Positions 2,937 through 62,842 of a stretch of DNA of 64,000 nt are shown here, one piece after another. Source of the stretch: Epithemia pelagica (lineage: Eukaryota; Protista; Bacillariophyta); NCBI GenBank assembly GCA_946965045.2, contig OX337237.1:186001-250000 (forward strand). Reading direction: 5' to 3'. A model generated the notes under the pieces. That model was not told where the DNA came from. It saw only the letters and a program-made list of their open reading frames with translations, and searched no databases. The position numbers and the translations under genes are program-made. The number at the start of each line of letters is the position of its first letter. Position 1 is the first letter of the stretch.

Positions 2937-5422
2937 TTAACGGGTCCACTGGTTCCAGAGAATCCAGGCACTGTACAGCATGGTACTTCCAAGAACTGTC
3001 GCTTCCAGTCGACCCAAACGGTCCTGCACTGTCATGTTTGGTACCGCATCAGGAGTTTTGGCCGTCTCTTTACTCATGCTCTTGATGAAAGCGGCATCAG
3101 CACAATCATGGTTCGCCTCGTCGACAGGAGCCACTGAACCATTAGAAGGATGTAGACTCAGAGTAGAAGAATGCATGCTGTCGGATGACACATCCGCCTT
3201 CTTCTCTGCCACTAACAATGAGTCCGTGCGAAAACCATTGTCCGTGGGCAAGGTTGGTTGAGGTGTGTCGTTGGAACCACAACGACTCTGGTTCTCGTCA
3301 ACCGCAGCTGCAATGAGAAGCTTTTGTTCTAAGGCATCGAAACGAGCCAAAAGGAGTTTCAGTTCCGTTGCATGGCGCTCCCTCTCATCTGGAACCCGTT
3401 CGGCCATTGGTTGGTTCGTCGTTTCCTTGTCTTTGAGACATTGAACTTGATGGGACACTTGCTCGAGTAGCTTGGTCAGTTGTTGGTGCCTTGAATCCTT
3501 TTCTTTGGCATCCAGGTCTTGGTACTTTTCATGATTTGCATCGAGACATTGAACCCGGCCGGCCACTTGGCAATTCTGGACATGCTGGTCCTCGAGGCCT
3601 TTTACTCGGATGACCATGTCGTTGACGAGATCTTGTAAACGGTTTTGAAAATCTTTGACGAGATCTTGCAAACGTGTTTCAATATCATCCGGGCTTTTGA
3701 TTGATTCCACCGCGGCTTCCATGTCAGTCAAACCGTACGGTAGATTCTCGATTTGCCGGTCTTCGAGGCCTTTTACTCGGATGACCATGTCATTGACGAG
3801 ATCTTGTAAACGGTTTTGAAAATCTTTGACGAGATCTTGCAAACGTGTTTCAATATCATCCGGGCTTTGGATTGACTCCACCGCGGCTTCCATGTGAGTC
3901 AAACGGTCCGGTAGATTCTCGATTTGCTGGTCTTCGAGGCCTTTCACTCGGTCGGTCAAGTCTTTGACGAGACCATGCAGACGTTTGAATTCATTAGGGC
4001 CCTGGATTGACTCAACCACCGCTTCCATGCGAGTCAAACAGTCATGCAGGCCTGGTGATTGTTCGCTCCCCAATCTATCACATGGAAACGAACGTAACGT
4101 TTTGTCATTGTCTCGACTCACTGTCTCATTGGTGACCGGCTTTTTGGATACTGGTGCCTTCTTGAGGCGTTTCCAGGACGTTCCATCCAATGGCTTTTGG
4201 CATGGTATAGATGGACGCTTGGTTCCTGATGCCGTACTTAGCTGTGGAGAGGCCTCGTGCTTTTTCAAATAACAGACACAAAAAACATGAGAAAAATACG
4301 CGTCTGGAGAAATGTTATTTCATTAACTGGACGACGTACCTTCGGAATTGTTCCTTGCCGAGTTGTTTCCAAGTTTCCCAGGCCGCCACCAAACTGCAAT
4401 GACTCCACTGTACCAGAGATTGTATCGACTGCCAGTAGCCTGCCTGATTCAGGAAGAGCCAACAAAACTTGACCATAGTTTGGCTTATTCAACTTGGTCA
4501 ATTCTGACGTCTCTCGTTGCTCCAAATCAATGACGTCCATGGATCCTGCCCACTTGTCGTTACAATCCCAACCTCCAGCAACCACAATTTTGGAACCAAC
4601 AACAACAGAGTGATGGTGGTAGCGAGCGTGCGGCAAGCAAAGATCAGTTTCCACCTTCCAAGACAGAAACTCTGGGCGTAATTTGCGACAGGATGATTCA
4701 CCGCCTGGAACATGCTTGTTTGGATCATTGGCGCTGTCATTCGTTGCAAATTCAATACATTCCACCGACTTCATGGCTTTATAATTGGACATTGCTATTC
4801 CACCAAGAATGTACATTCTATTTTCAACCGCAATAGTGGTAAACCCAATACGTTGTACAAGGTTTGGGTACGAGGCTCTAGCAAGAGTGAGTGTGTGGTT
4901 GTCTGGGTCACGAGTATCCAGAACCTGCATCCTGACGCGGCTTCCATAAGTCATGACAACAATGTAGCGGTCCTTCAGCACGGCAGTAGAACCTGCATTA
5001 CTTGGACGGGCAGACAATTGACACTTTAAGTTGCACCAGCTTTCTGTCGTTTTCCCTGACATAGATGTAGTGTGCTTTTTCAACAGATCTTGGATGTTAA
5101 TGCGCTCAATGATATTTGTGCCACCGCCAATGGCGTAGACTGCACCGTTACAAACCACCGCATCAAAATCCCAGCGTGGCAAGTTCATTGGTGGGCCTTG
5201 TCTCCATTGTGAAATAGATGGAATCTCCATCATCTGGACAGAGTTGGTAGACCCACAGTCTTCTAGCCCTCCAATCATTAGCAGTGTTGTGCATCGCGTC
5301 CCGGAACTTTTCGGGGAAACGACAACCATTGCGCTTTTAAAGCGAAATCCTCCCACAGGAGAAGGCCATGAACTTTCCATGTGCCACTTGCTTTGGGAAG
5401 TCTTTTGTTCTTTGGCAGTCAT
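2937..5422 (-). CDS. Kelch-repeat / coiled-coil / C-terminal anchor protein A1; intron 4260-4339
   Basis: Kelch motifs (MIGG, GPPMNLPRWDF..VVCNGAVYAIGG, VENRMYILGG, VGSKIVVAGG). An 80-nt GT..AG phase-0 intron joins ORF 4265-5554 in frame to ORF 2937-4268. The start may be 5422 or 5524. Confidence 0.85.
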
Positions 5423-5620
5423 GTTGGTGGGTGAGGAGGAGAATCTGCCGTTCTTGTTCGTCGATGAATCCGCGGTGGATGGAATCGAATCCTTGTTGTC
5501 GCCAATCAATAGAGAGGAACTCATCTTGAATGATTTTTGTGATCCAAACGACACGCTATGCCTTATTTAGGTTTTCAAGCGAACGCCTCGACTCTGTCCA
5601 TAAAGATCGGGACACGACTC

Positions 5621-5769
5621 TAGTTCACACCAAAACTCCAGACTTGTGAGTCTTTTGGACTGATGGAACTATTATAGGTTTTGAAGTGAACGTCCTCGCT
5701 GTCCATCTACAACCTGCTTTATGCTGCGGCAAATTGCGACAAGAGTGTAATTCACACCAAAACTCCAGA
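5621..5769. promoter_or_regulatory. Paired 24-bp upstream motif TGTARTTCACACCAAAACTCCAGA (5621-5642, 5746-5769)
   Basis: The same motif recurs upstream of the Kelch genes at 10150, 10276, 40003, 40067, 52504, 52564 and 57271. Regulatory function is inferred. Confidence 0.55.
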
Positions 5770-6191: not shown

Positions 6192-6661
6192 TTATTCCAA
6201 TGAGTCGGTCAACGACGACGACAATAAGGCGGTTGGTGAATTGTCCGAGGTGGATGATGTGGGTGTCCTGGATGGTTTGCTGTTTCCTCCCCAAGAATAC
6301 AATGCCTTTGTTGTAGTGACACTTGGATCCGCATCCATCAGTGTGTATAGTCGTGCTACATCTTCTTTCGTTCGGGGGGCCTCGCTCTTGTTGTTGTTGT
6401 TCTTGTTGTGGTGTGCGACCGCATTGTGGGTATGACGATGATGCAGCCGTGTCAATTCATGTTCCTTCGTTTCGACACTCGTCACGGTTGTCGTATGTTT
6501 TGTTACCTTGAAACAACGACGACCCAAACGATGATGGCGTCCGCATCAATGGTTGCGAGGTGGCTTCTCGTCGCGCACGGGCATAGTCGCCAATCTGCCA
6601 CAAACAAACCATGGCAATGGCAAAAAAGACATTGAGAGAGGCCAAACTCCACGCCATTTGA
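6192..6661 (-). pseudogene. Duplicated 3' fragment of the MFS transporter gene
   Basis: Matches 10720-11180 (TKEHELTRLHHRHTH...SSSLTDSLE). Homology stops at ggccaaactccacgccatttg, next to repeat R1. Confidence 0.85.
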
Positions 6662-6673
6662 ATCTACTCGTGT

Positions 6674-6800
6674 GGATAAGGACCTGAAAACTTTCGACAA
6701 AATGAGATAAACCTCCTAGAGCATGGTTGGTGCATGACACGGCGCTGTTTCTAGGCAGGTTTTTGTGTTTCATAGTCCGAAACAAAATAGAGCAGGCATA
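6674..6800. repeat. Dispersed repeat R1, copy 2 (at the tandem-duplication junction)
   Basis: ggataaggacctg...tttctaggcaggttttgtgtttcatagtccg. Confidence 0.75.
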
Positions 6801-7546
6801 GCGTTTACCGCCTGTCCGTCGGCGCTCCGCAAAACTCGCACATGCTGTGATCCGCGACCAAAAGATACCGTCGACCATATACCGTCGACACCGCGGCGAC
6901 GGAACAGAGCCAATCTGTACTCCGTATCCTTGTTTGGCAGAACCAGCGGACCAGAATAATAATCTTCGATAGCTATTCGTGGCAATGGTTGGAGAGGACA
7001 ATGACAAGGGAGAGAATTGAATCGTTTTCAACGGTTTACAACGCCATGGAACTTCAAGAATGGTGCTTCCCAATGCTAATCTCTATAGTGTTCTATTTGC
7101 CACGCCTTGAAGAGAGTGCTTGTTGTCATCAATGTCATATATAGGGAAGAGGCAACAGTCGGCAACATTTTGGCAACGCAATTTCGCAAGAGCAGGTGTC
7201 CTCACTATGTACACCAATAAACATGGTTTGCTTCAATGTCGCTACCTCCCCCCTTCGTTTGTCTCTGCTTGCCGTAAGCTTCCTATTGTGAACAAGAAAT
7301 TCAGAAAAACCTACAGCCTTTCATGGAACAACAACAAAGCTTCAAGTAACACATCATGTACTATAGGAGAGCCATCCGGGTTGGGTACAAAAGGACGTTG
7401 TCCAAAGTCCATGCAGACAGAGATTCGAATGGTATAGAATCACAGTGTTGCGCGCGCAAGTCAAGGGTCTTGAAATATGAAAGATATGTATTGTGTGTGT
7501 GAGAGAGAGAGAGAGAAAGAGATCTGGTTGCCTTGGGACACGTTGT

Positions 7547-9972
7547 TTAACTGGTCCACTGGTTCCAGAGAATCCAGGCACTGTACAACATGGTACTTCC
7601 AAGCACAGTCGCTTCCAGTCGGCCCACACGATCCTGCACTGTCATGTTTGGCACTGTGTCAGGGGTTGGGGTCCCTTCTGGACTCGTGGTCTTGTTGGCA
7701 TTCGAATTCATATGGTCGTCGACAGGAGTAGCCTCTGGACCATTGGAAGGATGCATACTCAGAATAGAAGAATGCATGCTGCCGGATGCACCCGCCTTCT
7801 TCTGTTCCAAGAATATTGAATCCCTGCGAGCAGTGGCATTGTCCGTGGGCCAGGTTGGAGGACTCTGGTTCTCGTCAATTGCAGCTGCTGCAACAAGCTT
7901 TTGTTCCAAGGCATCCAAACGAGCCAAAATGAGTTTCTGTTCCGTTGCATGGCGCTCCCTCTCATCTGGAACCCGTTCGGCCATTGGTTGGTTCGTCGTT
8001 TTCGTGTCGTTGAGACATTGAACTTGATGGGACACTTCCTCGAGTAGCTTGGTCAGTTGTTGGTGCCTTGAATCCTTTTCTTTGGCATCCATGTCTTGGT
8101 ACTTTTCATGAGTAGCTTCGAGAAATTGAACCCGCTCAACCACTTGGCAATTGTCGACAAGCTGGTCCTCGAGGCCTTTTACTCGGATGACCATGTCTTT
8201 TACGAGATCTTGCAAACGTTTTTCAAACTCATTCGGGCTTTGGATTGACTCAACCGCCTCTTCCATGCGAATCAAACGGTCAGCCAGATTCTGGACATGC
8301 TGGTCCTCGAGGCCTTTTACTCGGTCGGCCATGTCTTTGACGAGATCTTGCAAACGTTTTTCAAACTCATTCGGGCTTTGGATTGACTCAACCGCCTTTT
8401 CCATGCGAGTCAAACGGTCTGGTAGATTCTTGATTTGCCGGTCCTCTAGGCCTTTTACTCGGTTGGCCATGTCTTTGACGAGACCTTGCACACGGTTTTC
8501 TAAATCATTCGGGCCCTGGATTGACTCAACCGCCTCTTCCATGCGAGTCAAACGGCCATGCAAGCCTGGCGATTGTTCGCTCCCCGATGTACCACATGCA
8601 GACGAACGTAACTTTTCGTCATTGTCATTGTCTCGATTGACTGAATTATTGTTGACTGGCTTCTTGGAGTTGGTTTCTGGTGCCTTCTTGAGGCGTTTCG
8701 AGGACGTTCCATCCAATGGCTTTTGGAATGGTTTAGAAGGACGCTTGATTCCTGTTCTAGTACTTCGCTGTTGAGAGGGCTCGCACTTTTTCGAATCACA
8801 GACACAATAAACATGAGAAAGATAGTCTGGAGAGAAGTTATTTCACTCACTGGACGACGTACCTTCGGAATTGTTCCTTGCCGAGTTGTTTCCAAGTTTT
8901 CCTGGTCGCCACCAAATTGCAATGTCTCCAGCGTGCCAAAGATTGTATCGACTGCCAGTAGCCTGCCTGAATCAGGAAGAGCCAACAATGCATTTACATT
9001 GTTTGGCTTATTCAACTTGGTCAATTCTGACGTTTCTCCTTGCCCCACGTCGACGACTTCCACGGATCCTGCACACTTGCCGTTAAGATCCCAACCTCCG
9101 GCAACCACAATCTTGGAACCAACAACAACAGCCTGATGGTGATAGCGAGCGTGCGGCAGGCAAAGATCTGTTTCCACCTTCCATGACAGAAACTCTGGGC
9201 GTAATATGCGACAGGATGATTCACCGCCTGGAACATGCTTGTTTGGATCATTGGCGCTGTCATTCGTTGCAAATTCGATACATTCCACCAACTTTAAGGC
9301 TTTATAATTAGACGTTGCTTTTCCACCAAGAATGTACATTCTATTTTCAACCGCAATAGTGGTAAACCCAATACGTTGTACAAGGTTTGGGTACGACGCT
9401 CTAGAGAGAGTGAGTGTGTGGTTGTCTGGGTCACGAGTATCCAGAACCTGCATCCTGACGCGGCTTCCAAACGTCATGACAACAATGTAGCGGTCCTTCA
9501 GTACGGCAGTAGAACCTGCATGACTTGGACGGACAGGCAATTGACACTTTAAGTTGCACCAGCTTTCTGTCGTTTTCCCTGGCATAGATGTAGTGTGCTG
9601 TTTCAAGAGATCTTCGATTTTAATGCGTTCAATGGCCAATGTGCCACCGCCAATGGCGTAGACTGCACCGTTACAAACCACCGCATCAAAATCCCAGCGT
9701 GGCAAGTTCATTGGTGGGCCTTGTCTCCATTTTGGAACACAGTTCGCTCCGGATGGAATCTCCATCATTTGGACAGAGTTGGTAGACCCACAATCTTCTA
9801 GCCCTCCAATCATTACCAGTGTTGTGCATCGCGTCCCGGAGCTGCAGATGGTTCTGCTTTTCGGGGAAACGACAGCCATTGCGCTTTTAAAGCGAAATCC
9901 TCCCACAGGAGAAGGCCATGAACTTTCCATGTGCCACTTGCTTTGGGAAGTCTTTTGTTCTTTGGCAGTCAT
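7547..9972 (-). CDS. Kelch / coiled-coil / anchor protein A2; intron 8786-8862
   Basis: Close paralog of A1. A 77-nt GT..AG intron restores frame from ORF 8548-10104 to ORF 7547-8716. Three 46-aa coiled-coil repeats. Ends LGSTMLYSAWILWNQWTS. Confidence 0.85.
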
Positions 9973-10719
9973 GTTGGTGGGTGAGGAGGAGAATTTGCCG
10001 TTCTTGTTCGTCGATGAATCCGCGGTGGATGGAATCGAATCCTTGTTGTCGCCAATCAATAGAGAGGAACTCATCTTGAATGATTTTTGTGATCCAAACG
10101 ACACGCTATGCCTTATTTAGGTTTTCAAGCGAACGCCTCGACTCTGTCCAGTTCACACCAAAACTCCAGACTTGTGAGTCTTTTGGACTGATGGAACTAT
10201 TATAGGTTTTGAAGTGAACGTCCTCGCTGTCCAGCCTTATGATGCGGCATATTGCCTGCAAGGTCGCGACAAGAGTGTAATTCACACCAAAACTCCAGAC
10301 GTGAGTCAGCATGGCGTTCTGTCGCATTGCTATACTCCACTGGAAGTATTGGACTGCGGATCTTATATAGACAAGGAACCAAGATGTTGCTTCTTCAAAG
10401 TCGATCGAGGTATACATCTCATATATATAGGTACGAAGACCTACATTATAACCAAATGAACCAAACAGAGAGCCGATCGTACTTAATACCTTTCTATCCA
10501 GCTGGAATCGTATGCACATCACAGTGCATAGAGAGAGAGATTGCAGGAAGGTTCTGGTTCTACCCCGGATTGTGTCGCCCAATGGTATCTATACTAGAGG
10601 CCCGTGGGATAGGAAACAGGGATCATGGAGAGACACCGAGCGAGTAGTCGCTGCTCCCAACACATTTGGGAAACTGCGCACCACATGGATCTCTCCTTAT
10701 GTTGCCTGCTGTCGGCTAC

Positions 10720-13458
10720 TTACTCCAACGAGTCTGTCAAGGACGACGACAATGAGGCGGTTTGCGAATTGTCCGAGGTGGTCCTGGATGGTTTGCTCTT
10801 TCCTCCCCACGAATACAATGACTTTGAAGGAGTGACACTTGGATCCGCATCCAGTGTGGATCGTCGTGCTACGTCTTCTTTCGTTGGGGAACCCTCGCTC
10901 TTCTTGTTGTGGTGTGCGACGGCAACAGTGTGGGTGTGACGATGATGCAACCGTGTCAATTCATGTTCCTTCGTTTGTCCGGTCCTTGCACCCACATCAT
11001 TGTCAACTGCACCACCAATGTCATTGTTTGTTTCCGTACTACCATGAAAGGACGACGACCCAAACGAGGATTGCGTCCGCATCAAGGGTTGCGAGGTGGC
11101 TTCTCGTCGCGCGCGGGCATAGTCGCCAATCTGCCACAAACAAACCATGGCAATGGCAAAAAAGACATTGAGGGAGGCCAAACTCCACGCCATTTGAAAT
11201 CCCAGTTCATTCAAGACGGAAAAGACCAAGGGTGGTAACCAGGCCAGGACGTTGGCGGCCAACATCATGAGTCCCATCAATTCGGCCCGAGCGGGAACGG
11301 ACGAATCGTCATGGTCATGGTGGTGGTGGTCCGCGGCCAAGCCCTCTTGTTTGTCCTCATCCTCGCCACTGCTTTTATGCGAAAGAACTGCTGCATCCAA
11401 GGACTGTTTTGCTTGGTCGTCTTTTACCAAACCTGCTTCTGCCTCCGCTGCCGTCGTCGTGGTTGCTGGCGTCGTTGTCGTTGTGGGCATGAGATTCATA
11501 TAAATGGTATTGTCCACGGGTGGGAGCCATCCAAGCAGCATGCCCCACAAGACAAAAAATACCGTGGTGGGCCATCCCTGATGTTGCGGTCCCGTCAAGA
11601 CGCACGAGGCGGCCGTGGTGACAACAATGCAAAGCGCATTGCAAATCAAGGCCGACACGACGGGACTTTGAAAGTGGACCGACAAGAATCCACCGAGCAA
11701 ACTACCGGGAATGCCCGTCAAGAGGGAAATGAAAAAGACGAGACCAATTTGAGTGGCCGACATTTGCAAGACTTCTTTGAGATAGGTTGTCACAATGGCG
11801 GCAAAGCCCGAAACCTGTATTTGTAAGATAATAAGAAGAAAGTATAATAATAGAGTGCCACCCACATCAAAACAGGCAGCAACCGAAACACAACACAGCC
11901 ACATCCAAAAAATGACAATTGTCAGAGAAAGAGAAGAGAGAGAAAGCAATGAGAACGAAAGAAGGGGGAGGAACAAGCGAGAGAAATAAAGAAACTGCTC
12001 CGCACACACGAACTGCAGGCCCCGACAACGACACCGGTTTATATTACTCCATGCATCCGTTCCCAGATTTGTGTAATAGTGTATCCGCTCGTCTTGTCGT
12101 CCTTCTGTGGAGTACACAATGGTACGTACCGCGGCCTCCGAACACATGCGAGCACAGATGGTCCAACACAGGGCCCGATGGGACGCGACAATGCGACGAC
12201 TGGTTTGATAGACCTGGACAAAGCCCCGGGTCCACAAATTTTTGGTACGACGGGCCGCGGGTCGAGGACGAAAATACAACTGCCAGGCCAGGGCAAAACA
12301 GGGCCAGGATACGAGGAGGGTCAAGACTTGACTGATGCGCGCCGTTTGAACATTGTTCGACAAGGGAGACGACGACGAATCGTCATCATTGTTGATGTCA
12401 TTTGGTGAGTCATTTGGTTCGTCCTCAATGGTCGTTGCGGTCCTGGTTGTGGATGTGCCATGATGATTCCACAGGGCCGACACACCAAAGACAGAGAGTA
12501 AAAAGACGAGCATGCTGATATATTGAACGACATTGTATCCGGAATTGTACTGCGCCTTGAGGTGAGGATCGTGCGTGAGTTCCGTCAAGTAGGCATAGGC
12601 CGCGGCCGCATGCACGTTAAACAAGACGCTCGTGACAATTTGCAAGCCGGCGACCCACATCCACGTGTGTGGACCAATCGTGGCTTCGACGCCTTTTAAC
12701 AGTGCCATGGCCCAGGCCGAGACCAACCCGACGGCGCGACGATAGGGCGTGTGATCGACCACGGCCCCCACAAAGGGCAAACACAGGGATCCCAGCAAAC
12801 CGGCGACAATGGCAATGTTGGTAATCAATGAGGAGGGACGAAATCCGTGAATGCGACAGACCGCGTTGGGTGAAGTATCGTCGTTGCCATTGTACACGGG
12901 AGATGAGTCGTTGGGATTGGAAGTGTCACTCGTACCACCACTGCAGTGCAGGGCCGCCGCGGCTTGGGCCAGTTCGAGCAAGGCCGGTGCCAAAACCATG
13001 GAACTCATCAAGACATGGCCTCGGGCATAATAATCCAAGGTCAAGCCCCACACTTCGGGCGGATTCTTCTTGTTGGGCGTATGGTTGTGGTTGGATGTGA
13101 CCAAAGACTCGTCGTCTTGTTGTTCTTCTTCTTCGTGTTGTGGGAGTGGAGAAGAGGATGCGGATGCTGCTGGTCCTGGTCGACGTTGTTGTGTGGGGGA
13201 CCACCACTCCCTCCAAGACCAGGAAGAAGATGATGATGAAAGTCGTGGTGGTAGTTCTTCCTCATCGACAAACAATTCGTCGTCGTGCTCGTCTTTTTGG
13301 AAGGATGGATTGTCATGGTAGTGATGCTTCGTTGGGTGGTGGTCGTCGTTCCCACGAGTGGATAATGTGGTGCTCGTGGCCAATTGTGAAGCATCCTGTG
13401 GTGCGGCCAAAGAAGAAGACGCATGATTGGAACGATTTCGTTCCAGCCAGGGCAACAT
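10720..13458 (-). CDS. MFS transporter, Atg22/UMF1-like; probable intron 11815-12129
   Basis: About 12 hydrophobic segments; motifs LCLPFVGAVVDHTPYRR and AYAYLTELT. Removing the 315-nt gtacgt..atacag segment joins SEAA to VSGFAAIVTTYLKEVL. Confidence 0.8.
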   Translation of the reverse strand: MLPWLERNRSNHASSSLAAPQDASQLATSTTLSTRGNDDHHPTKHHYHDNPSFQKDEHDDELFVDEEELPPRLSSSSSSWSWREWWSPTQQRRPGPAASASSSPLPQHEEEEQQDDESLVTSNHNHTPNKKNPPEVWGLTLDYYARGHVLMSSMVLAPALLELAQAAAALHCSGGTSDTSNPNDSSPVYNGNDDTSPNAVCRIHGFRPSSLITNIAIVAGLLGSLCLPFVGAVVDHTPYRRAVGLVSAWAMALLKGVEATIGPHTWMWVAGLQIVTSVLFNVHAAAAYAYLTELTHDPHLKAQYNSGYNVVQYISMLVFLLSVFGVSALWNHHGTSTTRTATTIEDEPNDSPNDINNDDDSSSSPLSNNVQTARISQVLTLLVSWPCFALAWQLYFRPRPAARRTKNLWTRGFVQVYQTSRRIVASHRALCWTICARMCSEAAVRTIVYSTEGRQDERIHYYTNLGTDAWSNINRCRCRGLQFVCAEQFLYFSRLFLPLLSFSLLSLSSLSLTIVIFWMWLCCVSVAACFDVGGTLLLYFLLIILQIQVSGFAAIVTTYLKEVLQMSATQIGLVFFISLLTGIPGSLLGGFLSVHFQSPVVSALICNALCIVVTTAASCVLTGPQHQGWPTTVFFVLWGMLLGWLPPVDNTIYMNLMPTTTTTPATTTTAAEAEAGLVKDDQAKQSLDAAVLSHKSSGEDEDKQEGLAADHHHHDHDDSSVPARAELMGLMMLAANVLAWLPPLVFSVLNELGFQMAWSLASLNVFFAIAMVCLWQIGDYARARREATSQPLMRTQSSFGSSSFHGSTETNNDIGGAVDNDVGARTGQTKEHELTRLHHRHTHTVAVAHHNKKSEGSPTKEDVARRSTLDADPSVTPSKSLYSWGGKSKPSRTTSDNSQTASLSSSLTDSLE

Positions 13459-15065: not shown

Positions 15066-15280
15066 TCAATGTTGATTACACAGTACTCGCCTCGCGAGAT
15101 CCACATTGTGGATCTACGAACTCTGCCTAATAAGGTATTGATGGAGGGAGGATCTCGCATCTCCATCTCGCATCTCGCATCTTTGCTGCCATCGCGCGTA
15201 TATCGCTCTTGTCATCCTTTATCGCCATGGGCCCTTCGCGTTCGTCTCGGATTCCATATCTAGTACAGGTTTTCTACAGT

Positions 15281-21392: not shown

Positions 21393-22150
21393 TGTTAGGA
21401 TTCTCACCGAAAACTAGGTGGCGAAACCTACAACTCATCGAATGATGCTAGTATTTTATGGCATCCGATGACATTTTCCTAAAAGTGAGAAAAGAATGTC
21501 GGCATGCTCGCGAAACTATAAATTTGGCCACGGCATGCTCGCAGTGCACGCGTTATCGGCGACCGCTCGGATATTAACTATGGCCCAACACGTGCGCGCC
21601 CAAAACTATCAAGTGCGCGCCTCTACTATCCGAGTACGCGCATCCACGATTCGACCTAACGGTCTATGTAATCAAAGCACGAATCACGATCACGCGAGAC
21701 CATATCTCTGTTCCCACAATTCCAAGAATGCAAACAGCAACGCGCCCAGGACAAGACTTATACCACGACAAAGCAAGAGCTGTTGCATCCCATACATGTT
21801 ATCCATCACCCTATACATTCAATATACACCAATGCCGGTCCACTCCAACCAGTGAGGACCTATCACACCAGATCCATGGCCGTATGCAAGAGCCAGGACC
21901 TCGGCACCGTCAACCACCTTAGTTAGTAATCGTCTCACAATCATTAATATCACCATTTTAACACTCATCTTAAGACTAACCTCTTATCAGTGGACCGACT
22001 GCCCCCACCCACGGCGGACTTCGACTTGCAACTCTTCTCTGACCCGTGGAGGATTGTTGTATCGGTTGGTGATTCGATTGTCGGCTCAGCGAGCCTTTTA
22101 CCTATCCTAACTATCTGTCTAACCCCTGTTGAATCGAGAGAAGTTTATCA
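21393..22150 (+). repeat. Copia LTR (758 bp), left copy
   Basis: TGTTAGG...TTATCA, matching 29211-29968. Flanked by ATCAT on both sides. Confidence 0.92.
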
Positions 22151-40515: not shown

Positions 40516-40627
40516 CAGTACCTGCTTCTCTTTTTCCAGAGCTTTCAAGCGTTTCTCTTGATCCTGACGACTCGCATCCAGTCGCTTCAAATGCTCAAGA
40601 ATGAATAGCCCCCTTTTGGCATCAGAA
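40516..40627 (-). pseudogene. 112-bp fragment of Kelch D exon 2 (50859-50970) in spacer DNA
   Basis: SDAKRGLFILEHLKRLDASRQDQEKRLKALEKEKQVL is nearly identical to D. Confidence 0.85.
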
Positions 40628-46866: not shown

Positions 46867-47339
46867 GGCGAATTCTGGGATCTCAGGAGGAGGCGTCCCG
46901 TGGTAGGTGGCTCCGGAAAGTCGAAGGGCGTTGGTTCCACTTCGTCGGGCTCTTGTGTAGGAACTCTAGCGCGTGGCGCATGACGATCATGCCAGCGAGG
47001 AGGACCACGGACACGGTGGTCGTATTGCCGACTTGCGACAATCAACGAAGGAAACTTGTGTAACGGTGCACCAAGTACGTTTGTCATGGCTTGGGTGCTC
47101 ATGATTATGGCAGAATAGCACACGAGCAGCTTGGGTAAGACTGCAAGTGGCAAGCGACGATAGTAGCGACAGGCACGGCGATGCCGACGATACGGTTTGC
47201 GAGGCCAAAGGTTTTGGTGTAGAAGTCGCCCGATGGCGAGAATCAATCGCAAACAACAATCAAAGACGAAGGATAAAATGGGCTGTGGATTCAGAAATAC
47301 CAAGAAACTCCAAAGGGCAAGCAGAATCCGCCCAACCAG

Positions 47340-48928: not shown

Positions 48929-49164
48929 TGCCGCAATCTATCGTTATAGATGCGTCTCTTGTCGTACTCAGCGGTCAAATGATCGCTATGGTCAACAAAT
49001 GATGACGGTAGGCAGGGAACGGAAGGGAGAAGAGATGCAACAATCAAACAAAGCGAAATTATGATTCCAAACTGTGTGTGGGAGTTATTCTACTTTCTTG
49101 GCTCGACTCGCGCGCTCCAAGGCTGCTACCCCACTAGCATGCATACTTCCCCACTGTCACGACA

Positions 49165-49600
49165 CAATCGTTATTCGTCATTCTTCCTTCAACCAAGATG
49201 AAGAGAAGTGGGAACCCTCGGAAGCGTGGCCTCCTCTGCACTGGATTGTATCGTTGCCCGCTCCAGGCATCGAATGGAACATGGAAGCAAGTACGGATAC
49301 GGACCGTCTAATTGCCGCACTTCGGATCAATCCTGAAGTTGTGTCTTGGAAGCAGGAACCAAATTGAGGCTCTCGACTGCGTGTTTTCGTCATGCGGCGA
49401 TACTCTTGGTGAATGGTTCCCAACACCGCATTGTTGTGGCTGGTGGGAGAGGGAAACCCGAGGTTTGCGCCCCGTCTCCATGACAACCGTACGAGTTTTG
49501 GATTTGAACTATGGCACCGTGTCTACGAAAAGATCTCCAGGGCCGACGATCGGGCGGATATCTCGTGGCCCTCCCGGATCATAATAATAGGTTGGTCGCT
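49165..49600 (+). pseudogene. Multiply deleted copy of Kelch C (61607-62842)
   Basis: Matches ~61646-61730, then jumps to 62273, 62405 and 62464-62730. Confidence 0.8.
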
Positions 49601-49728
49601 ATGATTGGCAAGGAAGATTTTCTTGCACTATGAACAATGACACCCACAAAATGTATGGAATCATTGCAGTCCGAAGTAACGCCAAACACCAATAATCATG
49701 AGTTTGTTACCATCGGACAGAGATTCGA

Positions 49729-49846
49729 CATCTGCTTCAATCGTCGATCATCATTCTGCTTTCAGCCAAGATGAAGAGAAGTAGGAAACCTAGGAAGCGT
49801 GGCCTCCTTTGTTGGGTGGATGGCGTCAAGAGCATGTCACTGTTGC
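49729..49846 (+). pseudogene. Short 5' fragment of Kelch C with stop codons
   Basis: tcgtcgatcatcattc...gcgtggcctcct.tgttgggtggatggcgtcaag matches 61650-61740. Confidence 0.75.
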
Positions 49847-50438: not shown

Positions 50439-52394
50439 TTAAGGTCCATCCTTTGAAATTCGGATGCGCCCTTTAGGGTTGTTCCAATAAACGACAACCT
50501 GCTCTCCTGAGCCATTGTCGCGATGAACAATCGACGTAACCAACTGTGTGTCCTTTGCGCCGCGATTCAACAGGCCCTGGTCATCTACAATCCGCTCTCC
50601 TGAGGCATTGCCTGAACCATTGTCAGGAGTAACAATTGCTGCAGCTGTATTCTGTGCGTCGTTTGCACCAAGACTTGACAGACCCTGGCGATTTAATTCC
50701 TGAACATTCTGTCCCATAGTATCAAATCGACTCATGAATTTCTGTTCGAATTGAGCAAGGAATTGCTCTTGCATGCCTTTGATTTGTTCTAATGTTTGCT
50801 GTTGGTGTTTTGTACTTTGGTCTTCGAGGCGCCGGGTTCGTTCAGTAACTATTTGCTCCAGTACCTGCTTCTCTTGTTCCAGAGCTTTCAATCGTTTCTC
50901 TTGATCCTGACGACTCGCATCCAGTCGCTTCAAATGCTCCAGAATGATGAGACCCCTTTTGGCATCAGAATCGGTATCATATACAACTTTTTGATCAGAT
51001 GAAGACTCCCTGTTCTCAGAGTTCGGAATAGCTGTTTGATCCGTTGGACTATCAATGCTCACTGTGTCCAGAGTAACTGGTGTTGAGCCGCTTTCTTCTG
51101 ATGCTTCCTTGGGGCGTTTCAAGGCCGTTGCATCTATTATCTGATGACAATCATGAGGGGGACGTTTAACCCCAGATGTGGGAGATTCTTGTGCGTAGTA
51201 TATCTCATGTTCCAACTAACGAAATCACAATGTGATAAACATTAAGCCGATATAGAAAAGTAGGACGCTTTCAGTTACAACACGTACCTCCTTCTATACC
51301 TGAGAGCTTCCAAACTGCAATGCTTCCATCTTTTCGCTATACATAGCAAGCAACTCGCCAGAGTCAGGCTGGAAGACCATGTATTGACCACATTTCGCCT
51401 CGCTCATGTCGGGCAGAGCAGAAACTCTTCGACGCTCCAAATCAATCACTTCCAAGCGCCGACAGCTACCTCCGTATACTACAATTTTGGAGCCAACTGC
51501 AACCGACATGTAATCTTGGCGTGGAACTGTAACCAAAATGTCCTGTTCCTCGTTCCACGATAGAATCTTTGGGTGAATTTGGTCCGGTGAGGATTCAGGT
51601 ATATCAAATTCAATATATTCAACTGACTTGGGGGCTGACACTCGCTGGTGACCACTAACGATGTAAACCTTGTTTCCAATCGCCGCAGTGCTCAATCGAT
51701 AACGTGGCCGTCGACAACGTGGTACGGATTCTTGAGGAGCACAAATGGTTACCAGTGTGTGATTGCTCGTGTCCATTATATCAACACTGTGCTGCAGATC
51801 AATATGAAGATCATGTCCACGACTCGCAATAAAAACAATGTATCGGTCTTGTAACACAGTCGCATTTCCATATCGTGACATACGAGACAATTGACAAGAT
51901 ACGTTGTACCATTTCTGAGAAAGGTTTGCCGTTGACTCATCCAAAAGATCGTTTATTTCGATTCGTTCAATCGTGGCTACGTTCCGTCCTCCAATTGCAT
52001 AGACTGCACCATTGCAGACGACTGCATCAAAGCGTGAACGAGGCCGATTCATTGGAGGACCATCCCTCCATTTTGGAAAATCGCTAGGGTCCGTAGGAAT
52101 TTCAAGAAGTCGAACTGAATTGGTTTGCTCTTTACTGCGACCAGACTTTGTCGAGTTGATTTCTCCACCCAAGACAACCAGTGCTGTGGAACATTGAAAG
52201 CAATTAGGGTTGACACTGGCCTGGTGATGCTTGGTCGAGGAAACCAGAACTGTCCCATGAACTTGGCGATTATCTTCCATCATCTGGGGCCATGATACTT
52301 TCACTTGCCACTGGCTCTGAGAAACGCATGCCGTTGGATCTTCGTCATCAATGGAGGAGGAGGGATTGTTTTCTTGCATATTGGCTTGGGTCAT
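50439..52394 (-). CDS. Kelch D + coiled coil, lacking the C-terminal anchor; intron 51216-51299
   Basis: Kelch ORF 51294-52394 is joined in frame to 50439-51215 by an 84-nt GT..AG intron. Confidence 0.75.
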
Positions 52395-54224: not shown

Positions 54225-54560
54225 CGGCGAGAAAGGCGTTCTCGAACGATCAACCGGTCTACACTCTCTATCAAACAACTTGAATGCTCTTTTTGTCGGC
54301 AATGGCCGGGTCTACAATATCCGTGGCGGAAACAACAATTCGAACGGCTGTCTCGATAGTACAATCGAACGAATGAATGAATGGACAGTGCCAATCTTGT
54401 CCTGAAACAAGACCAGTTCGATTTGCATTTTCCCACCTGGGAAGACTCTTTTCGTTTGTAAAATCTCATGCAACATTCTGGCGGACCTTGCCCAATAAAA
54501 GTTACCGGTTCCACGAGCCGGGTATGCGGCGGCGACTGTATGAGATCGAACGGAGGGAGA
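54225..54560 (+). pseudogene. Degenerate internal fragment of Kelch C
   Basis: aacttgaatgct...ggaaacaacaattcgaacggctgtctcgat...acaagaccagttcga...ggttccacgagccgg matches 61940-62180. Confidence 0.75.
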
Positions 54561-55089: not shown

Positions 55090-57066
55090 TTAACTGGTCC
55101 ACCGATTCCAGAGAATCCAGGCACTGTACAACATGGTACTTCCAATCAAAGTCGCTTCGAGTCGGTTCATTCGATCCTGCATCGTCATGTTAGCTGCGCT
55201 GCTTGTGGGAGGAGTATTGGAGGTACTCACGCGGATGGAATTCTCGCCGCAAGGATTTGTTAGTGTCGTCTTATTCTCATCCAGTTGTTGCGCGTTCCAG
55301 ACATGGCCAGAAGACACAAGAGACTTGTGAATCTCCGTAGCAAGGGCTTTGGTTGTCCTGGAACACAATAGGGTGACACCTGCAGAACCATTGTCCGTAG
55401 GCAACCTTGCAGCGGACTTGATCGGTGCTCTGTCGTTGGTACCAGCACGTGTCGAATCACTCTGGTGATCATCGACAAGCTTTTGTTCCAATGCATCCAA
55501 ACGAGCAAGCAGATTCTGTTCCATTGCACGGTGCTCCCTATGCAGATCTTGGAGACCTTGCAAACGTTTTTCAAAAGCATTCGGGTCCTTTTGGATTGAC
55601 TCAACAACGGCTTCCATGCGAGTCAAACGGTCATTCAGGCATGGCTTTTGTTCGGTTCCCCAGAAGCCAGAAGCAGAGGAGTGGCACTGTGCATCAGTGT
55701 CTCGACTAGCTGAATCACTGGTGGCCGGTTTCTGGGAGTTGGTTTCTGGTGCCTTCTTTGTGCGTTTTGAGGACGCTCCATCCAATGGCTTTGGACGAAG
55801 ACGCTTGGTTCCTGATGACGTACTTTTTTCTCGGGAGGCCTTTCACGTTTTCCAATGACAAAAAGAAGCAATATGCGAAATGAGAAAGACATTCTTCGAC
55901 ACAAACCGTCTGAGACATGATGTTTTTTCCGCTGGAGGACGTACCATAGGAATTGTTCTTTGACGACTTTCCAAGTTGCCCATGCCGCTTTCAAATTGCA
56001 ATGACTGTATTGTACCATTGTATGCATCGACTGCCAGTAGCCTGTCCGATTCAGGAAGAGCAAACAAGAAATCTCTTGCACTAAAACTTCCCATCATCTC
56101 GGGCAATGCTGACTTTTCTCTCCGCATCACATCGATGACTTCGATGGACCTAATCGACTCGCCGTTGCGATCAAGACCTCCAGCAACCACAATTTTGGAA
56201 CCAAGAACAACAGATGAATAGAAGTAGCGAGCATGCAACAGGAATGAAAGATCTGTTTCCACATTCCACGACAGAATCTGTGGACGTAATGCGTGGTTGG
56301 ATGATTCACCGCCTGTTTCAGGCTCATTATGATCGTTGGCAATGATGTCATTCCATTCAAATTCAATACATTCCACCAAATTTATGGCTTCGTTATCAGA
56401 CATCCTTTCTCCACCAATAATATACACCTTACTTTCAACCGCTGCAGTAGTGAATCTCGTACGAGGGACATGCGTTCGAGACGGGGCACCAAATGTAGTC
56501 AGTGTGTGGTTGTCTGGGTCGCCAGTATCCAGAACCTGAATCATGCCATGCTGGTCTTGATACATCATGACAACAATGTAGCGGTCTTTCACCACAGCAG
56601 TAGACCCTTTAAAATTTTTAAGGGAAGCGAATTGACACGATAAGTCGCTCCAGCTTTGTGTCGGTTTCTCCGGTTCGGATGTATTGGGCTCTTTCAAGAG
56701 ATCGTGGATGTTAATGCGCTCAATGGTATCTGTCTGGTCACCTCCAAGTGCATAGACTGCACCATTGCAAACAACCGCAGAAAAATGCCATCGTCGCTGA
56801 TTCATTGACGGGCCTTTTTGCCAGTGTGAAATAGAGTTCGCTCCTGTTGGGATGTCCAAGAACGCTACACAGTTTGTAGGCTCCCATTTATCACCCTGAT
56901 CTCCTCCAAGTATTACCAATGATGTACGTAGCGTTCCAGAGCCACAATTGTTTTGGTTTTTCGGGGAAACGACAACCCATGCACTATCCATGTCAAATCC
57001 TTTCAAAGGCTCTGGCCACGAGCTCTTGACTTGCCACTTGCTAGCACATCTTCTGGTTCTCACCAT
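55090..57066 (-). CDS. Kelch / coiled-coil / anchor protein A4; intron 55840-55944
   Basis: A 105-nt GT..AG intron joins 55843-57066 to 55090-55785 in frame. Ends IGSTMLYSAWILWNRWTS. Confidence 0.82.
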
Positions 57067-59106: not shown

Positions 59107-61127
59107 TCAACGTGTCCAGTGGTTCCAGAGAATCCATGAGCTGTACAACATGGTACTCCGAAGCAAAGCTGTTTCCAGTCGGCTCATACGATCCTGCAAG
59201 GTCATGTTCGGCATGTTCATGGAAGGGGTTGTTGCATTCATAGAGACGCTAGAAGGCTTCATCATCGTTATCTCCTCATGAACTTGCTCTTGTGTTGCCA
59301 CACTCAAAACAGTGCATGAAGAAACAACAGAGTTTGGGGGCTCAGTAGCAATGGCTTGGCTTGTCGTGGGACGTAAGGTATCATGCACTGTCATGTTTGG
59401 AACGTCTGGGCTTTTTACCTCTTCACTTATGGTCTCGTCCGAGGCATCAGAAGGGTTCGTTTGTTCAGTTGCTCGTATACACGTTTTCTCAGTGTATAGA
59501 GCCTCTTCCTTTGGAGGACGTTTGCTGTCTGCCAATTGTAACTTCTGATCTAACGAAGCAATCCGAGACAATAGAGAATTTTCGTTTCGCTGTTTTGCTC
59601 CTGATTGTCATGTTCTTGCTTCGAAACCTGGTGTTCAAGACTCTGCATCCGTTTCTCCATATTCGCCAGGCTTCCGATCGCAGCAGTCGCAGCTTCAAGT
59701 CGGCTTACGCGCTCAAGTAAACACACTTTTTCTTTCGGCAAGGGGCCAGGAGTAACTAGCACTGCTTGGACTTCTGGATCTTTCTTCTGGCGTTTACAAG
59801 GCTCCCTATCCAAATCCTCTGGGTCCATCTGAGGCGGGCGTTTCTCCCCGGACTGAACAGCGCTGGGTCTGAGATAATCGCTACTCTCCTGTTCACGAAA
59901 AAAATGATGAATAACATATTCCTACAACACTTTCAGGGAACCAGCTTCTGTTGAACACTTACCTCAGCTTGTTTCATAGGCTGAGGGTTCATGACGTGAC
60001 CATAGCACAATATCTCCGTCAAACGAGGGCTTTTACTACCAGCCACAGCAAGCAACCTCCCACCACCCGGTTGTGCCACCAAAAATTGGCCATATCTTGC
60101 GTACGTCATATTGGGCAGCATTGTCACTCTTTGGCGCTCCAGATCGAGGACTTCCACGATTTTAATAATATTTGGGCCCGTTTCTTTGAAGCCTCCAGCT
60201 ACGACGATTTTGGAACCAACCAAAACCGAAGATGGGTAAAAATGGGTATGCGACAAGCATAAATTGTCCTCATGTTTCCAAGACAACACTTTTAATTGGG
60301 AGACACCGTTGGAGGATCCGACCTGTGTCTCAGATTTGTGATCGCCAAACCCACTCTCATTCATTTTGAATTCAATACATTCAACTGATTTTTCTCCTTT
60401 ACCATCTTCAAGACGCTTTCCACCAATGATGTAGACCTTGCTCCCAACAGCCACGGCACTGGGATAAATACGAGGCACATGTTCTTCAGGAACAGGAATT
60501 GGAATCAGTACTGGCGAGAACGGATCTCTTGTATCCAATACCTCAATTGGTAAGGGTGCACATCTGTTCTCCCCTGTGTTTTCACCTATCACAACAATAT
60601 ATCTCTCTTTTAACACGACAGCCGCAAGTACTCCCTCTCTTCGTGCTGACAATTGGCATGATAGAGTGACCCATGGTTGTGTTGTTTCTCCTTCTTTTGG
60701 CTGTTTTACAAGATCATGGATATTGATTCGCTCAATCCCGCCGTTGCTCGTAATCACGTATACTGCACCATTGCAAGCGACCGCAGCAAAGTCGTAGCTT
60801 GGCTTCAGCATCGGCTGACCATCTCTCCATTGTGGAACATGGTGGGTCCGTTGAAAGATCCATCAGCACAACTGAATCTGTGGCCTCATGTGTTTTATTC
60901 GCATACGATTCATACCGAAGCCCCCCGAGGATAATCACGGTAACACATTGCGGCAAACTGTTTTGGTTGCAATCGGCATAGTCGCTCGTCGGTACGACGA
61001 CCATTGCATGTTTCATACGCCCTCCTCCTAAAATGAGAGGCCAGGAAGGTTTGGACTCCCATTCATACTGAGGATAAGATGTGCTTATCTCGTTCGTGTC
61101 AATGCATGGTGAAGAAGAAGTGTCCAT
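59107..61127 (-). pseudogene. Kelch B2 with two frameshifts (~60830, ~59575); intron 59889-59962
   Basis: Four ORF pieces assemble into one Kelch-coil-anchor gene ending LRSTMLYSSWILWNHWTR. Confidence 0.75.
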
Positions 61128-61606
61128 GACGAGGATAATGAAAGCAGAGTAAATGGCTGTGGATCAAGATGCTCTTCCTCTTCAGGTTTTCAGGAAGCGA
61201 GTACTGGAGACGGGAATGAAATTTTGATTGAGCGAGAGTCTTGCGGGCCCATCAAAGCCCAAAGTATTGGGGTGGAAGTGCACAGGACTATGTTTTGAGG
61301 AACTTTTGGTTTCGGTTGAACGTCAAAGAACACGATCGCGGACGTGGTAGCCACTCAGATTTTTGTGTGAGCCATCCTTTGCAGACCCGCGAGAGTGAAA
61401 TCGTCGATCGCGCCGGCGGTTGTCCTGCTCTGTGCTCTGTGCCTGCGCGTTCTGCATCCCGACAGGCGCCATCGATCCCTTTTCTATACCGCGTAGATTT
61501 TCTTGCACCATGACCATGACCCGATGGAATCATTGCGGTCCGAATTCCGAATACGGACATTGATAGATCAGACGAATATAGCAACGACGACAGCTCCGCA
61601 ATAAGT

Positions 61607-62842
61607 ATGAGTTCGATACCATCGGAAAGAGATGCTGCACCAGCTTCATTCGTCGATCATCATTCTTCTTTCAACCAAGGTGAAGAAAAATGGGAAACCT
61701 CGGGAGCGTGGCCTCCTCTGTTGGGTGGATGGCGTCAAGGCCACGCCACGGTGACCATTACGGATGAGGAGGCCCACAGTGCCGTGGTGGTCCTGGGTGG
61801 AATCACTATTCAGGCTTGTGGCACGAAAAAGAAGGTCCAAAAACCTCTTTCCTCGGTTGTGATGTTGGATCTTTGGAGGAATGGCACCGAACCATCTACA
61901 TCATGGAGAGAGGGTCCGCCTCTCACTCAGGAGCGATCGAACTTGAATGCTGTTGTATGCAATGGTCGAGTCTATGTCCTCGGTGGAAACAGCAATTCGG
62001 ATGGCTGTCTCGATACAATCGAACGAATGGACATTGCCGATCTTGTCCGGAAACAAGACCAGTTCGAATTGAACTCCTCCAAGCAAGGCGCTTCTCCTAC
62101 AAGTACTGATACACCATTCTGGAGAACCTTACCGTGTAATTTATCGGTTCCGCGAGCCGGATGTGCGGCGGCGACCGTCCGAGATCGATACATTGTAATT
62201 TTCGGAGGACGGGGTAGGAACCGTATCTGGGTTTCCGCGGTGGACATTTTGGATGCTCGAGACGCCAACAATCACTGGATTGTATCGTTACATGCTCCTC
62301 CACACCATGTGCCGCGATTCCTGGCCAGTGCGGTGGCGGTAGGAAGCAAGGTGTACCTGATTGGTGGACAAACGCAAGAGAACCAAGAACTAAACTCGGT
62401 AGAATGCATCGAATGGAATATGGAAGGAAGCACGGATACGGACCATCCGAAAGAAGGATCCGAACTGCCGCATTTTCGGATCAATCCTCAAGTTGTATCT
62501 TGGAAGCAACAACCCAAATTAAGGCTCTCGACGGCGTGTTTTCGTCATGCGGCGGTACTGTTGGTGAATGGTTCCCAACACCGCATTGTTGTGGCTGGTG
62601 GGAGAGGGAAACTGGGATCGCGTCCTGTCTCCATGACAACCGTACAAGGTTTGGATCTGAATCATGGCACCGTGTCTACGAACCTCCCCGATCTGCAGGG
62701 CCGACGATCGGGCGGATTTCTCGTGGCCCTCCCGGATCATAGTCGGTTGGTGGCTGTGAGTGGCAGGGAAGAGGATGATTCCTTGGAAACCCTGACGTTG
62801 GACAAGTTTTGGAATCGCCCGAGCCCTGGAAGTTCCAGCTAG
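61607..62842 (+). CDS. Kelch C: intronless, propeller-only protein, head-to-head with B2
   Basis: VVVLGG, WREGPPL..ERSNLNAVVCNGRVYVLGG, RDRYIVIFGG, AVGSKVYLIGG, RIVVAGG. Confidence 0.88.
   Translation: MSSIPSERDAAPASFVDHHSSFNQGEEKWETSGAWPPLLGGWRQGHATVTITDEEAHSAVVVLGGITIQACGTKKKVQKPLSSVVMLDLWRNGTEPSTSWREGPPLTQERSNLNAVVCNGRVYVLGGNSNSDGCLDTIERMDIADLVRKQDQFELNSSKQGASPTSTDTPFWRTLPCNLSVPRAGCAAATVRDRYIVIFGGRGRNRIWVSAVDILDARDANNHWIVSLHAPPHHVPRFLASAVAVGSKVYLIGGQTQENQELNSVECIEWNMEGSTDTDHPKEGSELPHFRINPQVVSWKQQPKLRLSTACFRHAAVLLVNGSQHRIVVAGGRGKLGSRPVSMTTVQGLDLNHGTVSTNLPDLQGRRSGGFLVALPDHSRLVAVSGREEDDSLETLTLDKFWNRPSPGSSS

Follow-up and report, generated by a model that had tools for sequence, protein, structure and literature searches.

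A 64,000-nucleotide stretch of the genome of the diatom Epithemia pelagica (contig OX337237.1, positions 186,001 to 250,000), referred to here as the window, carries a cluster of genes that encode Kelch propellers. On balance, we lean toward the view that this is a lineage-restricted cluster that duplicates and decays fast, that it is an offshoot of a larger Kelch expansion, and that its proteins combine a variable head, a stalk, and a tail that fixes their location. The evidence for this view includes a second exon shared by seven copies, the conservation of the tail that ends this exon in six of them, and the mixture of intact and decaying genes.

In the model that we propose, one branch of the family gained the second exon behind a phase-0 intron, after a propeller-only type (copy J below) had split off. 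This exon encodes a basic linker, a helical stalk of variable length, a disordered spacer, and a terminal helix. The propeller presumably serves as the variable ligand-binding head, and the stalk may dimerize the propeller and space the head from the tail. The terminal helix would fix the protein in place, most likely by acting as a weak tail anchor or an interfacial anchor on the side of a membrane that faces the cytosol or nucleoplasm. Copies would be made by segmental duplication and lost through frameshifts, deletions, and retrotransposon-associated truncation.

Kelch copies and gene structure

Clustering of six-frame open reading frames (ORFs) produced a single family of 21 related ORF pieces in the window, and Pfam assigned ORF pieces to Kelch repeats. 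Searches by tblastn with representative exons, together with DNA self-comparison, resolved 10 propeller-bearing loci (A through J) plus two tail-exon remnants. This inventory agrees with a first-pass annotation of the same DNA, which had counted about 11 copies and fragments in four subtypes. Sequence identity and a phylogenetic tree define the subtypes as A, B, C, and H (subtype 1), D and I (subtype 2), F (subtype 3), and J with fragments E and G (subtype 4). Copies A, B, C, D, F, H, and I are on the minus strand, and J, E, and G are on the plus strand. A second exon is present behind an intron in seven of the 10 copies (A, B, C, H, D, I, and F), and subtype 4 consists of the propeller only.

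Copy A occupies positions 2937 to 5524. Its exon 1 (4340-5524) is an open frame of 395 codons encoding a six-blade Kelch propeller, as identified with Pfam, AlphaFold, and Foldseek. A phase-0 intron (4242-4339), predicted from sequence only, begins with the donor GGTACGT and ends with an acceptor that is either ACAG at 4242 or AAG at 4260. Exon 2 (2937-4241) encodes the basic linker, helical repeats, a low-complexity spacer, and a 34-codon tail (2940-3041), immediately followed by the stop codon. Copy B (7547-10074) has a 404-codon propeller exon (8863-10074) that is 89% identical to that of A, an intron at 8768-8862, and a second exon (7547-8767) with linker, helical repeats, and tail (7550-7651). 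Copy H (55090-57066) is also an open frame and consists of exon 1 (55945-57066), an intron (55840-55944), and exon 2 (55090-55839), whose tail lies at 55093-55194. The fourth member of subtype 1, copy C (37707-39785), has the same parts (exon 1, 38670-39785; intron, 38566-38669; exon 2, 37707-38565) and an intact tail (37710-37811), and its frame is shifted by a 35-bp deletion relative to H near position 38170.

Copy I (59107-61163) is a full-length D-type gene with an intron at 59889-59962 and a tail at 59110-59211. Its exon 1 is frameshifted near 60845, and its exon 2 has a 2-nucleotide insertion relative to D near 59610. Copy D itself (41978-43378) retains only the last three blades, followed by the intron (42734-42808) and an exon 2 with its tail at 41981-42082. 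Copy F (50439-52394) has an open frame made of exon 1 (51300-52394), an intron (51216-51299), and exon 2 (50439-51215). Copy J (61607-62842) is an open, propeller-only frame of 411 codons arranged head-to-head with I. Fragment E (49164-49844) comprises scrambled pieces of a J-type propeller, and fragment G (54274-54549) is a piece of such a propeller with 44% identity to J residues 140-223. Two further remnants are on the minus strand. One (37483-37527) is an older tail end that reads SWILWNQWT, about 180 bp downstream of the C stop codon; the other (40489-40626) preserves 46 codons of an F-type exon 2 helical region with 80% identity to F.

The first-pass annotation had proposed that most copies share a layout of propeller, phase-0 intron, basic linker, coiled coil, and a terminal Trp-rich motif. 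Linker, helices, and tail are indeed found together in A, B, C, H, D, and I. However, F lacks the Trp-rich tail and the J type lacks exon 2 altogether, so that "most" amounts to six or seven of 10 copies.

The phase-0 intron that had also been proposed is well supported by sequence when the exon junctions are aligned. An invariant GGTAMGT donor directly follows a complete codon in each of the seven copies with two exons, and an in-frame AG acceptor is predicted 74 to 105 nucleotides downstream. The stretches between these sites carry stop codons, or differ among copies by insertions and deletions that are not multiples of three; the D intron is 75 nucleotides long, is open, and can be read through in frame. 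Copies A and B each have two candidate acceptors 18 nucleotides apart. In H the conserved ACAG acceptor is changed, and the in-frame AAG is still present.

A 656-residue ORF (P0061) on a 753-kb contig is 96% identical to D and provides a natural full-length proxy. Without a break, it spans the propeller from its first blade onward, the in-frame intron, the linker, the helices, and the tail. In every search and structure prediction described below, exons 1 and 2 were handled separately.

The propeller exon

All nine propeller-bearing ORFs that were scanned (A, B, C, D, F, H, I, J, and P0061) match the Pfam model Kelch_1 with scores of 38 to 66 bits, compared with a cut-off of 20.1. In several of them, Kelch_6 and the KLHDC2/KLHL20/DRC7 model also score above cut-off. 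An AlphaFold model of A exon 1, based on an alignment of 17 sequences, has a predicted template-modeling score of 0.75 and contains 24 strands arranged in six four-stranded blades, with an N-terminal strand that completes blade 6. Foldseek and Protein Data Bank (PDB) profiles identify Keap1, KLHL12, KLHL20, NS1-BP, and designed Kelch propellers as the closest structures, at 15-20% identity, and the Foldseek probability to the Keap1 and KLHL propellers is 1.00. The propeller is thus predicted to be an ordinary six-blade Kelch fold.

These similarities raise the idea that the proteins are substrate receptors of ubiquitin ligases, in which the propeller would pick substrates and conserved segments of exon 2 would dock onto the ligase or onto a membrane-bound quality-control machine. 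The best Pfam models (KLHDC2/KLHL20/DRC7 and the F-box/Kelch model FKB95) and the closest solved structures are consistent with such a role. However, the likeness of the propellers is generic at this level of identity, and Pfam found no BTB, BACK, F-box, SOCS, or BC-box family in any exon 1, any exon 2 (searched to an E value of 1), or P0061. We therefore give the ligase explanation only a slim chance.

The first-pass annotation had noted that the proteins lack a signal peptide, and this observation holds. The N-termini are hydrophilic, with a maximum 8-residue Kyte-Doolittle mean of no more than 1.4 in the first 40 residues, and hydropathy, used here in place of a dedicated predictor, reveals no stretch resembling a signal peptide.

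The C-terminal tail

The same 34-residue tail ends copies A, B, C, H, D, and I. It reads, in order, PNMT, QDR, RLE, a stretch of Leu, Gly, Ser, and Thr residues, LYSAWILWN, one variable residue, WT, and one final residue that is R, S, or C. In an alignment of the tails, 20 of the 45 columns are invariant. An AlphaFold model of the 249-residue H exon 2 confidently places a 29-residue helix at its C-terminus (residues 220-248; predicted local distance difference test [pLDDT] of ~90). The last 15 to 17 residues of this helix are hydrophobic and rich in Trp and Tyr, and the hydrophobic stretch stops two or three residues before the stop codon.

At the protein level, purifying selection acts on the tail. 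Its synonymous divergence (dS) is 0.2-0.9, its nonsynonymous divergence (dN) is 0.03-0.15, and dN/dS is 0.10-0.3 for most pairs of copies. Between subtypes, dN is ~0.12 for the tail and 0.5-0.7 for the propeller; qualitatively, this bears out the earlier description of a fixed tail beside a diverging propeller. Recent gene conversion was considered as a cause of the conservation and was rejected, because synonymous differences are as frequent in the tail as in the propeller within subtype 1. In the tail, D and I are separated by six nonsynonymous changes and no synonymous ones, which is as expected for a pair of pseudogenes that have lost constraint.

The earlier proposal that the proteins are membrane-anchored is not sustained in its plain form, since it depends on ~15-17 hydrophobic residues for which the 19-residue Kyte-Doolittle mean is 0.85-0.95; the classical cut-off for a transmembrane helix in a window of this size is 1.6. 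The hydrophobic moment of the tail is low (0.15-0.2). A membrane anchor is nonetheless plausible; it could be a weak anchor of the tail-anchor type, or it could be interfacial, as the clustering of Trp and Tyr residues would suggest.

A profile of the six tails was compared with 1.84 billion representative proteins at a threshold of E ≤0.001. Nine matches were obtained, of which two are unrelated repeat proteins. All seven true matches are on contigs of 753,180, 250,863, or 203,247 bp, and all belong to this locus. They include the divergent tails of P0034 and P0040, and those of P0036 and P0037, which are more hydrophobic (reaching Kyte-Doolittle means of 1.5 and 2.0, the latter over 15 residues). 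When the tail region of D was used for a word search, the only match was the ORF of the window itself, and a scan of JGI metagenomes with the tail profile gave no genuine match. The single JGI match is a false positive, a bacterial flagellar rod gene beside nusA that shares only PNMTLQDR. As far as these collections show, the tail is confined to one locus of one organism. The statement in the first-pass annotation that the architecture was not recognized agrees with this result: in the libraries and databases searched, the tail has no match beyond this locus.

Several established C-terminal signals do not fit the tail. A glycosylphosphatidylinositol signal was rejected, because the proteins lack a signal peptide and their hydrophobic end is the best-conserved part, unlike a cleaved signal, which is poorly conserved. 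A type 1 peroxisomal targeting signal and a CaaX box were rejected because the C-terminal residues are WT plus R, S, or C. A luminal peptide of the KASH type (PPPX or VPT) is not present, as only two or three residues follow the hydrophobic stretch.

Immediately ahead of the terminal helix, all six tails carry an invariant Asn-Met-Thr triplet that matches the pattern of an N-glycosylation sequon; D and I carry it twice. The triplet is NRT and NRA in P0034 and P0040. Such a triplet is odd for a protein without a signal peptide.

Linker, stalk, and spacer

Alignment and the H exon 2 model divide exon 2 into five parts: a linker, a set of helices, a second helix, a spacer, and the C-terminal helix. 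The model predicts disorder for residues 1-62 and 134-214 and, with a pLDDT of ~90, helices for residues 68-131 as for the C-terminal helix. The helices carry a recurring DRL-x-R-x-E-A motif, and the second conserved helix contains LEQKL. The spacer that follows is ~80-100 residues long, is rich in Ser, Thr, Pro, and Asn, and is predicted to be disordered. In F, exon 2 encodes the linker and helices and does not end in the Trp-rich tail. Exon 2 has no significant match to Pfam at relaxed thresholds or to PDB sequence profiles, which returned coiled-coil noise only, and the sole Pfam match of a spectrin/Anc-1 type is below cut-off (E = 0.013).

Two copies have an expanded helical part. A 171-nucleotide unit is repeated 2.3 times in A (3583-3972), and a 138-nucleotide unit is repeated 2.9 times in B (8156-8555). 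These tandem duplications of the stalk, with repeats of 46 to 57 residues, are independent in A and B.

The linker is predicted to be disordered and contains two conserved basic clusters, in the arrangement KR, 11 to 14 residues, and K[RH]xKK. The clusters are spaced by 11 residues in H and by 14 residues in A, B, C, D, and F, and the second cluster reads K[RH]xKK or KRPK. This basic motif is kept in all seven copies with exon 2, including the tail-less F. The linker resembles a bipartite nuclear-localization signal, which suggests an alternative that we regard as unlikely, although it deserves more weight than the other rivals discussed here. The proteins could be soluble nuclear or inner-nuclear-membrane proteins, with the linker acting as a bipartite signal and the tail as an interaction or oligomerization element or as an inner-nuclear-membrane anchor. 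The complete retention of the motif would fit such a function, as would the short basic KRARP-type segments in which other members of the wider Kelch family end, and a tail that is too weakly hydrophobic for a classical transmembrane helix. However, the spacing of the clusters is at or beyond the classical 10-12 residues, the low hydrophobic moment speaks against an amphipathic packing helix, and the divergent tails of P0036 and P0037 are more hydrophobic, at 2.0 over 15 residues. Because the tail is a terminal helix that is conserved, rich in Trp, and not amphipathic, and because the proteins lack a signal peptide, membrane tethering is its most economical role.

Selection on the propeller

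Pairwise dN/dS values for the propeller, calculated by the method of Nei and Gojobori, are 0.55-0.81 within subtype 1 and 0.67 for D and I. When sites are divided according to the structural model, dN/dS is 0.32-0.70 for strands and 0.57-0.96 for the DA and BC loops, which form the canonical binding face of Kelch propellers. In these loops dN is about twofold higher and entropy is highest. The opposite face has values of 0.45-0.66, the A/B pair excepted. A 24-codon sliding window shows that blade 2 is strongly conserved (dN/dS of 0.11-0.23), and that values near or above 1 occur in blade 1, at the junction of blades 2 and 3, and in blades 5 and 6, although windows of this size are noisy.

The first-pass annotation had described the propeller loops as diverging. 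No structural class (strands, loops, or binding face) has a dN/dS above 1, and the difference between the binding face and the rest of the propeller is not significant (Fisher tests, p = 0.07-0.36). Diversifying selection is not shown by these values, and stronger selection on the loops or binding face was likewise rejected: there is a twofold trend in dN, yet the ratio stays below 1 and the class differences lack significance. These values are compatible with rapid change concentrated on the binding face and do not demonstrate positive selection.

Duplication and decay

Intact, frameshifted, truncated, and transposon-disrupted copies stand side by side, as the first-pass annotation had described. 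The reading frame is open in A, B, H, F, and J and disrupted by frameshifts in C and I; D breaks off at a Copia-type element; and E and G are scraps. Copies A and B form a 4.4-kb tandem duplication that is 80% identical. The blocks C/D/E and H/I/J are related to each other at 70-83% in DNA self-comparison.

The A/B duplication took along a 3' fragment (~117 codons; 6195-6545) of an MFS/Atg22-like gene, the complete 912-codon version of which is located at 10720-13458. The B position, which adjoins the complete gene, is thereby marked as the parental one.

Copy D begins in blade 4 and lacks approximately the first 200 codons in comparison with P0061. Its start is exactly where a Copia-type remnant (43379-48821, minus strand) stops. 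This remnant encodes gag (with a zinc knuckle) and pol (integrase and reverse transcriptase), has no pair of long terminal repeats (LTRs), and is cut at its 3' end at D. The position of the D start at a remnant without LTRs and without a 3' end points to a deletion that removed parts of both.

The 753-kb contig contains counterparts of several copies, with protein identities of 92% for C, 96% for D (intact there), 99% for I, and 89-96% for J (split into two ORFs). These represent either a recent block duplication or a divergent haplotype. The clade formed by the locus has at least about 25 members, including further ones on the 203-kb contig. Birth-and-death turnover, which the first-pass annotation had proposed, is well supported by the nested segmental duplications, the pseudogenes beside intact copies, the retrotransposon-associated truncation, and the additional copies on two other contigs.

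A more skeptical interpretation is that the cluster is largely non-functional DNA decaying in a transposon-rich region, that haplotypes inflate the number of copies, and that conservation of the tail reflects recent ancestry. The frameshifts in C and I, the truncation of D, and the scraps E and G would be expected in that case, as would dN/dS values of 0.5-0.96 over most of exon 2 and the propeller and the purely nonsynonymous changes between the tails of D and I. The near-identical counterparts on another contig, and a scaffold join within the window (see below), also fit. However, long open frames persist in five copies in the window and in P0061, every copy has retained its donor and acceptor sites, and blade 2 is constrained. 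Moreover, across subtypes the tail has a dN/dS of 0.1-0.2 at a synonymous divergence of 0.4-0.9, which indicates selection rather than recency. Pervasive decay consequently seems improbable as a description of the whole locus.

A wider Kelch family

A word search with J identified 136 Kelch clusters (at 90% identity) with E ≤0.001. The proteins are mostly 360-410 residues long and are 30-40% identical to J. Among the 120 matches listed, 28 are on one contig of 1,085,916 bp and 15 are on one contig of 329,724 bp. Contigs of 1,191,817, 1,679,170, 539,695, and 530,963 bp that carry members of this wider family recur among the carriers of the window's Copia family (at least 90% protein identity). 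Because these four contig sizes are common to both sets, the wider Kelch family presumably resides in the same genome.

In an 86-row maximum-likelihood tree, the clade of the locus is split from 74 other family members with a Shimodaira-Hasegawa-like approximate likelihood ratio test (SH-aLRT) value of 100. Within the locus clade, J branches first, then D/I, then F, and then subtype 1, and the rows that bear exon 2 form a clade (SH-aLRT of 92). This branching is to be read with the long branches of F and J, the quick-mode search, and the midpoint root in mind. The position of the exon 2 clade inside the locus clade indicates that exon 2 was gained once, after J had split off, and that F later lost or replaced the Trp-rich end. 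The tree thus indicates that the locus is a divergent branch of a larger expansion of ~400-residue Kelch proteins, which comprises at least 136 clusters that probably belong to the same genome.

Two other members of the wider family have long C-terminal extensions of their own. P0087 (675 amino acids; 1,679,170-bp contig) has a different long extension with a Trp-rich end, SAYWHWW, and P0070 has a coiled-coil extension without a Trp-rich end. C-terminal modules may therefore have been gained independently in other Kelch branches. A giant-virus origin is not supported, because a scan of viral contigs with the propeller alignment gave only generic Kelch matches at 24-25% identity.

Assembly gap and neighboring elements

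The window contains an assembly gap of 200 N (34293-34492). It touches no Kelch copy, lies more than 3 kb from the nearest one, and follows the Ser-rich end of an HMG-box ORF. Each 500-bp flank of the gap is unique, and the two show no overlap. By exact look-up, the genes to the left of the gap (MFS, Copia polyprotein, A, and B) fall on the 753,180-bp ENA contig and those to the right (C, D, F, I, and J) on the 250,863-bp contig. Because the flanking genes are recorded on two separate contigs, the gap is a scaffold join. No family member was found between 10074 and 37483, even at E = 10.

Besides the Kelch copies, the window holds the MFS/Atg22-like gene, an HhH-GPD-like ORF, the HMG-box gene, an ORF rich in Arg, Lys, Asp, and Glu, and two Copia-type retrotransposons. 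The HMG-box gene (32868-34292) runs into the gap. Just to the right of the gap is the long ORF rich in Arg, Lys, Asp, Glu, and Ser (35102-36481, minus strand), which has no Pfam match and could be of an RNA-processing type. Near the left end of the window, two tandem units of ~357 bp are 85% identical (1077-1771). Related sequences are found downstream of the tails of A, B, and C (2054-2809, 6549-7082, and 36659-36964, minus strand); they have no Pfam match, do not look like coding sequence, and probably represent a shared 3' flank that was carried along by the duplications. Rfam gave no match in the window.

The second Copia-type element, located at 21393-30768, is a complete LTR retrotransposon. 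Both of its LTRs are 1558 bp long and match each other at 100% identity, and the 1893-codon polyprotein ORF is intact. This ORF falls in a cluster (at least 90% identity) of 144 sequences from many contigs. The identical LTRs, the intact ORF, and the size of this cluster indicate that the element was active very recently. There is no clear target-site duplication at the LTR ends as defined here.

Interpretation and comparison with known systems

Several observations weigh against a fast-evolving family of proteins with a localizing tail. Splicing of the two exons and expression of the genes are predictions made from the DNA letters alone. Several copies are pseudogenes, and the existence of counterparts of C, D, I, and J at 89-99% identity means that the copy number could partly reflect divergent haplotypes. 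The adjacency of A and B to C through J depends on the scaffold join. Propeller dN/dS values of ~0.6-0.9 across strands and loops fit relaxed constraint as well as adaptive change. The 19-residue hydropathy of the tail is under the classical cut-off, and its 15-residue mean of 1.3-1.5 is like that of buried propeller strands.

If the tail is a targeting module, then the locus shows how a new architecture is invented, in that an amplified binding fold was combined with one exon and the product was then multiplied and pruned. With no relative outside the locus among the 1.84 billion proteins searched, the tail is a candidate for a de novo or very fast-evolving localization signal. The parent expansion, with at least 136 clusters in what is presumably one genome, is a notable lineage-specific expansion by itself. 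If the genes are silent, the locus would still be a clear example of birth-and-death evolution around active Copia elements. Our literature searches found neither an account of this architecture nor one of a comparable expansion of Kelch genes in diatoms.

The proteins share with the Kelch superfamily (Keap1/KLHL, KLHDC, and F-box/Kelch proteins) the Kelch motifs and a six-blade fold closed by an N-terminal strand. They differ from it in the absence of a BTB/BACK, F-box, or BC-box partner and in a C-terminal exon that has no counterpart, and the propellers are only 15-20% identical.

Other beta-propeller families undergo similar turnover. The fungal NACHT/HET-WD40 "nwd" genes are hypervariable recognition genes with beta-propellers, and plant F-box/Kelch genes form a birth-and-death family. 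As in these families, the window contains clustered paralogs and pseudogenes beside intact copies, and change is faster on the ligand-binding face. In contrast to the nwd genes, the copies have no nucleotide-binding or death-fold signaling domain, and dN/dS is below 1 in every structural class. The first-pass annotation had likened the turnover to that of immune or recognition gene clusters, an analogy that stays conjectural. We consider it doubtful that the locus encodes a diversifying repertoire of membrane-tethered intracellular receptors, directed against viruses or parasites or used for self/non-self recognition or mating, which would be an undescribed system resembling innate immunity. 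In such a system, the wider Kelch family, with well over a hundred genes, would provide the variable heads, and one branch would have captured a species-restricted module resembling a tail anchor together with the stalk of variable length.

The fungal cell-polarity proteins Tea1, Kel1, and Kel2 have an N-terminal Kelch propeller followed by a long coiled coil. The order of parts, a propeller and then a long helical region, is the same in the window's proteins, although the likeness is one of layout only and no sequence relationship was detected. The fungal proteins are not known to have a hydrophobic helix at the C-terminus or to be amplified in tandem.

A parallel for the C-terminal half is provided by tail-anchored coiled-coil tethers, which include golgins such as giantin and the WIP/KASH-like nuclear-envelope proteins of plants. 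Like these tethers, the proteins encoded in the window have no signal peptide, a long helical stalk, and one hydrophobic helix at the extreme C-terminus, an arrangement in which everything before the helix would face the cytosol or nucleoplasm. They differ in that the hydrophobic stretch is shorter and weaker, in that only two or three residues come after it, and in that the stalk carries a Kelch head.

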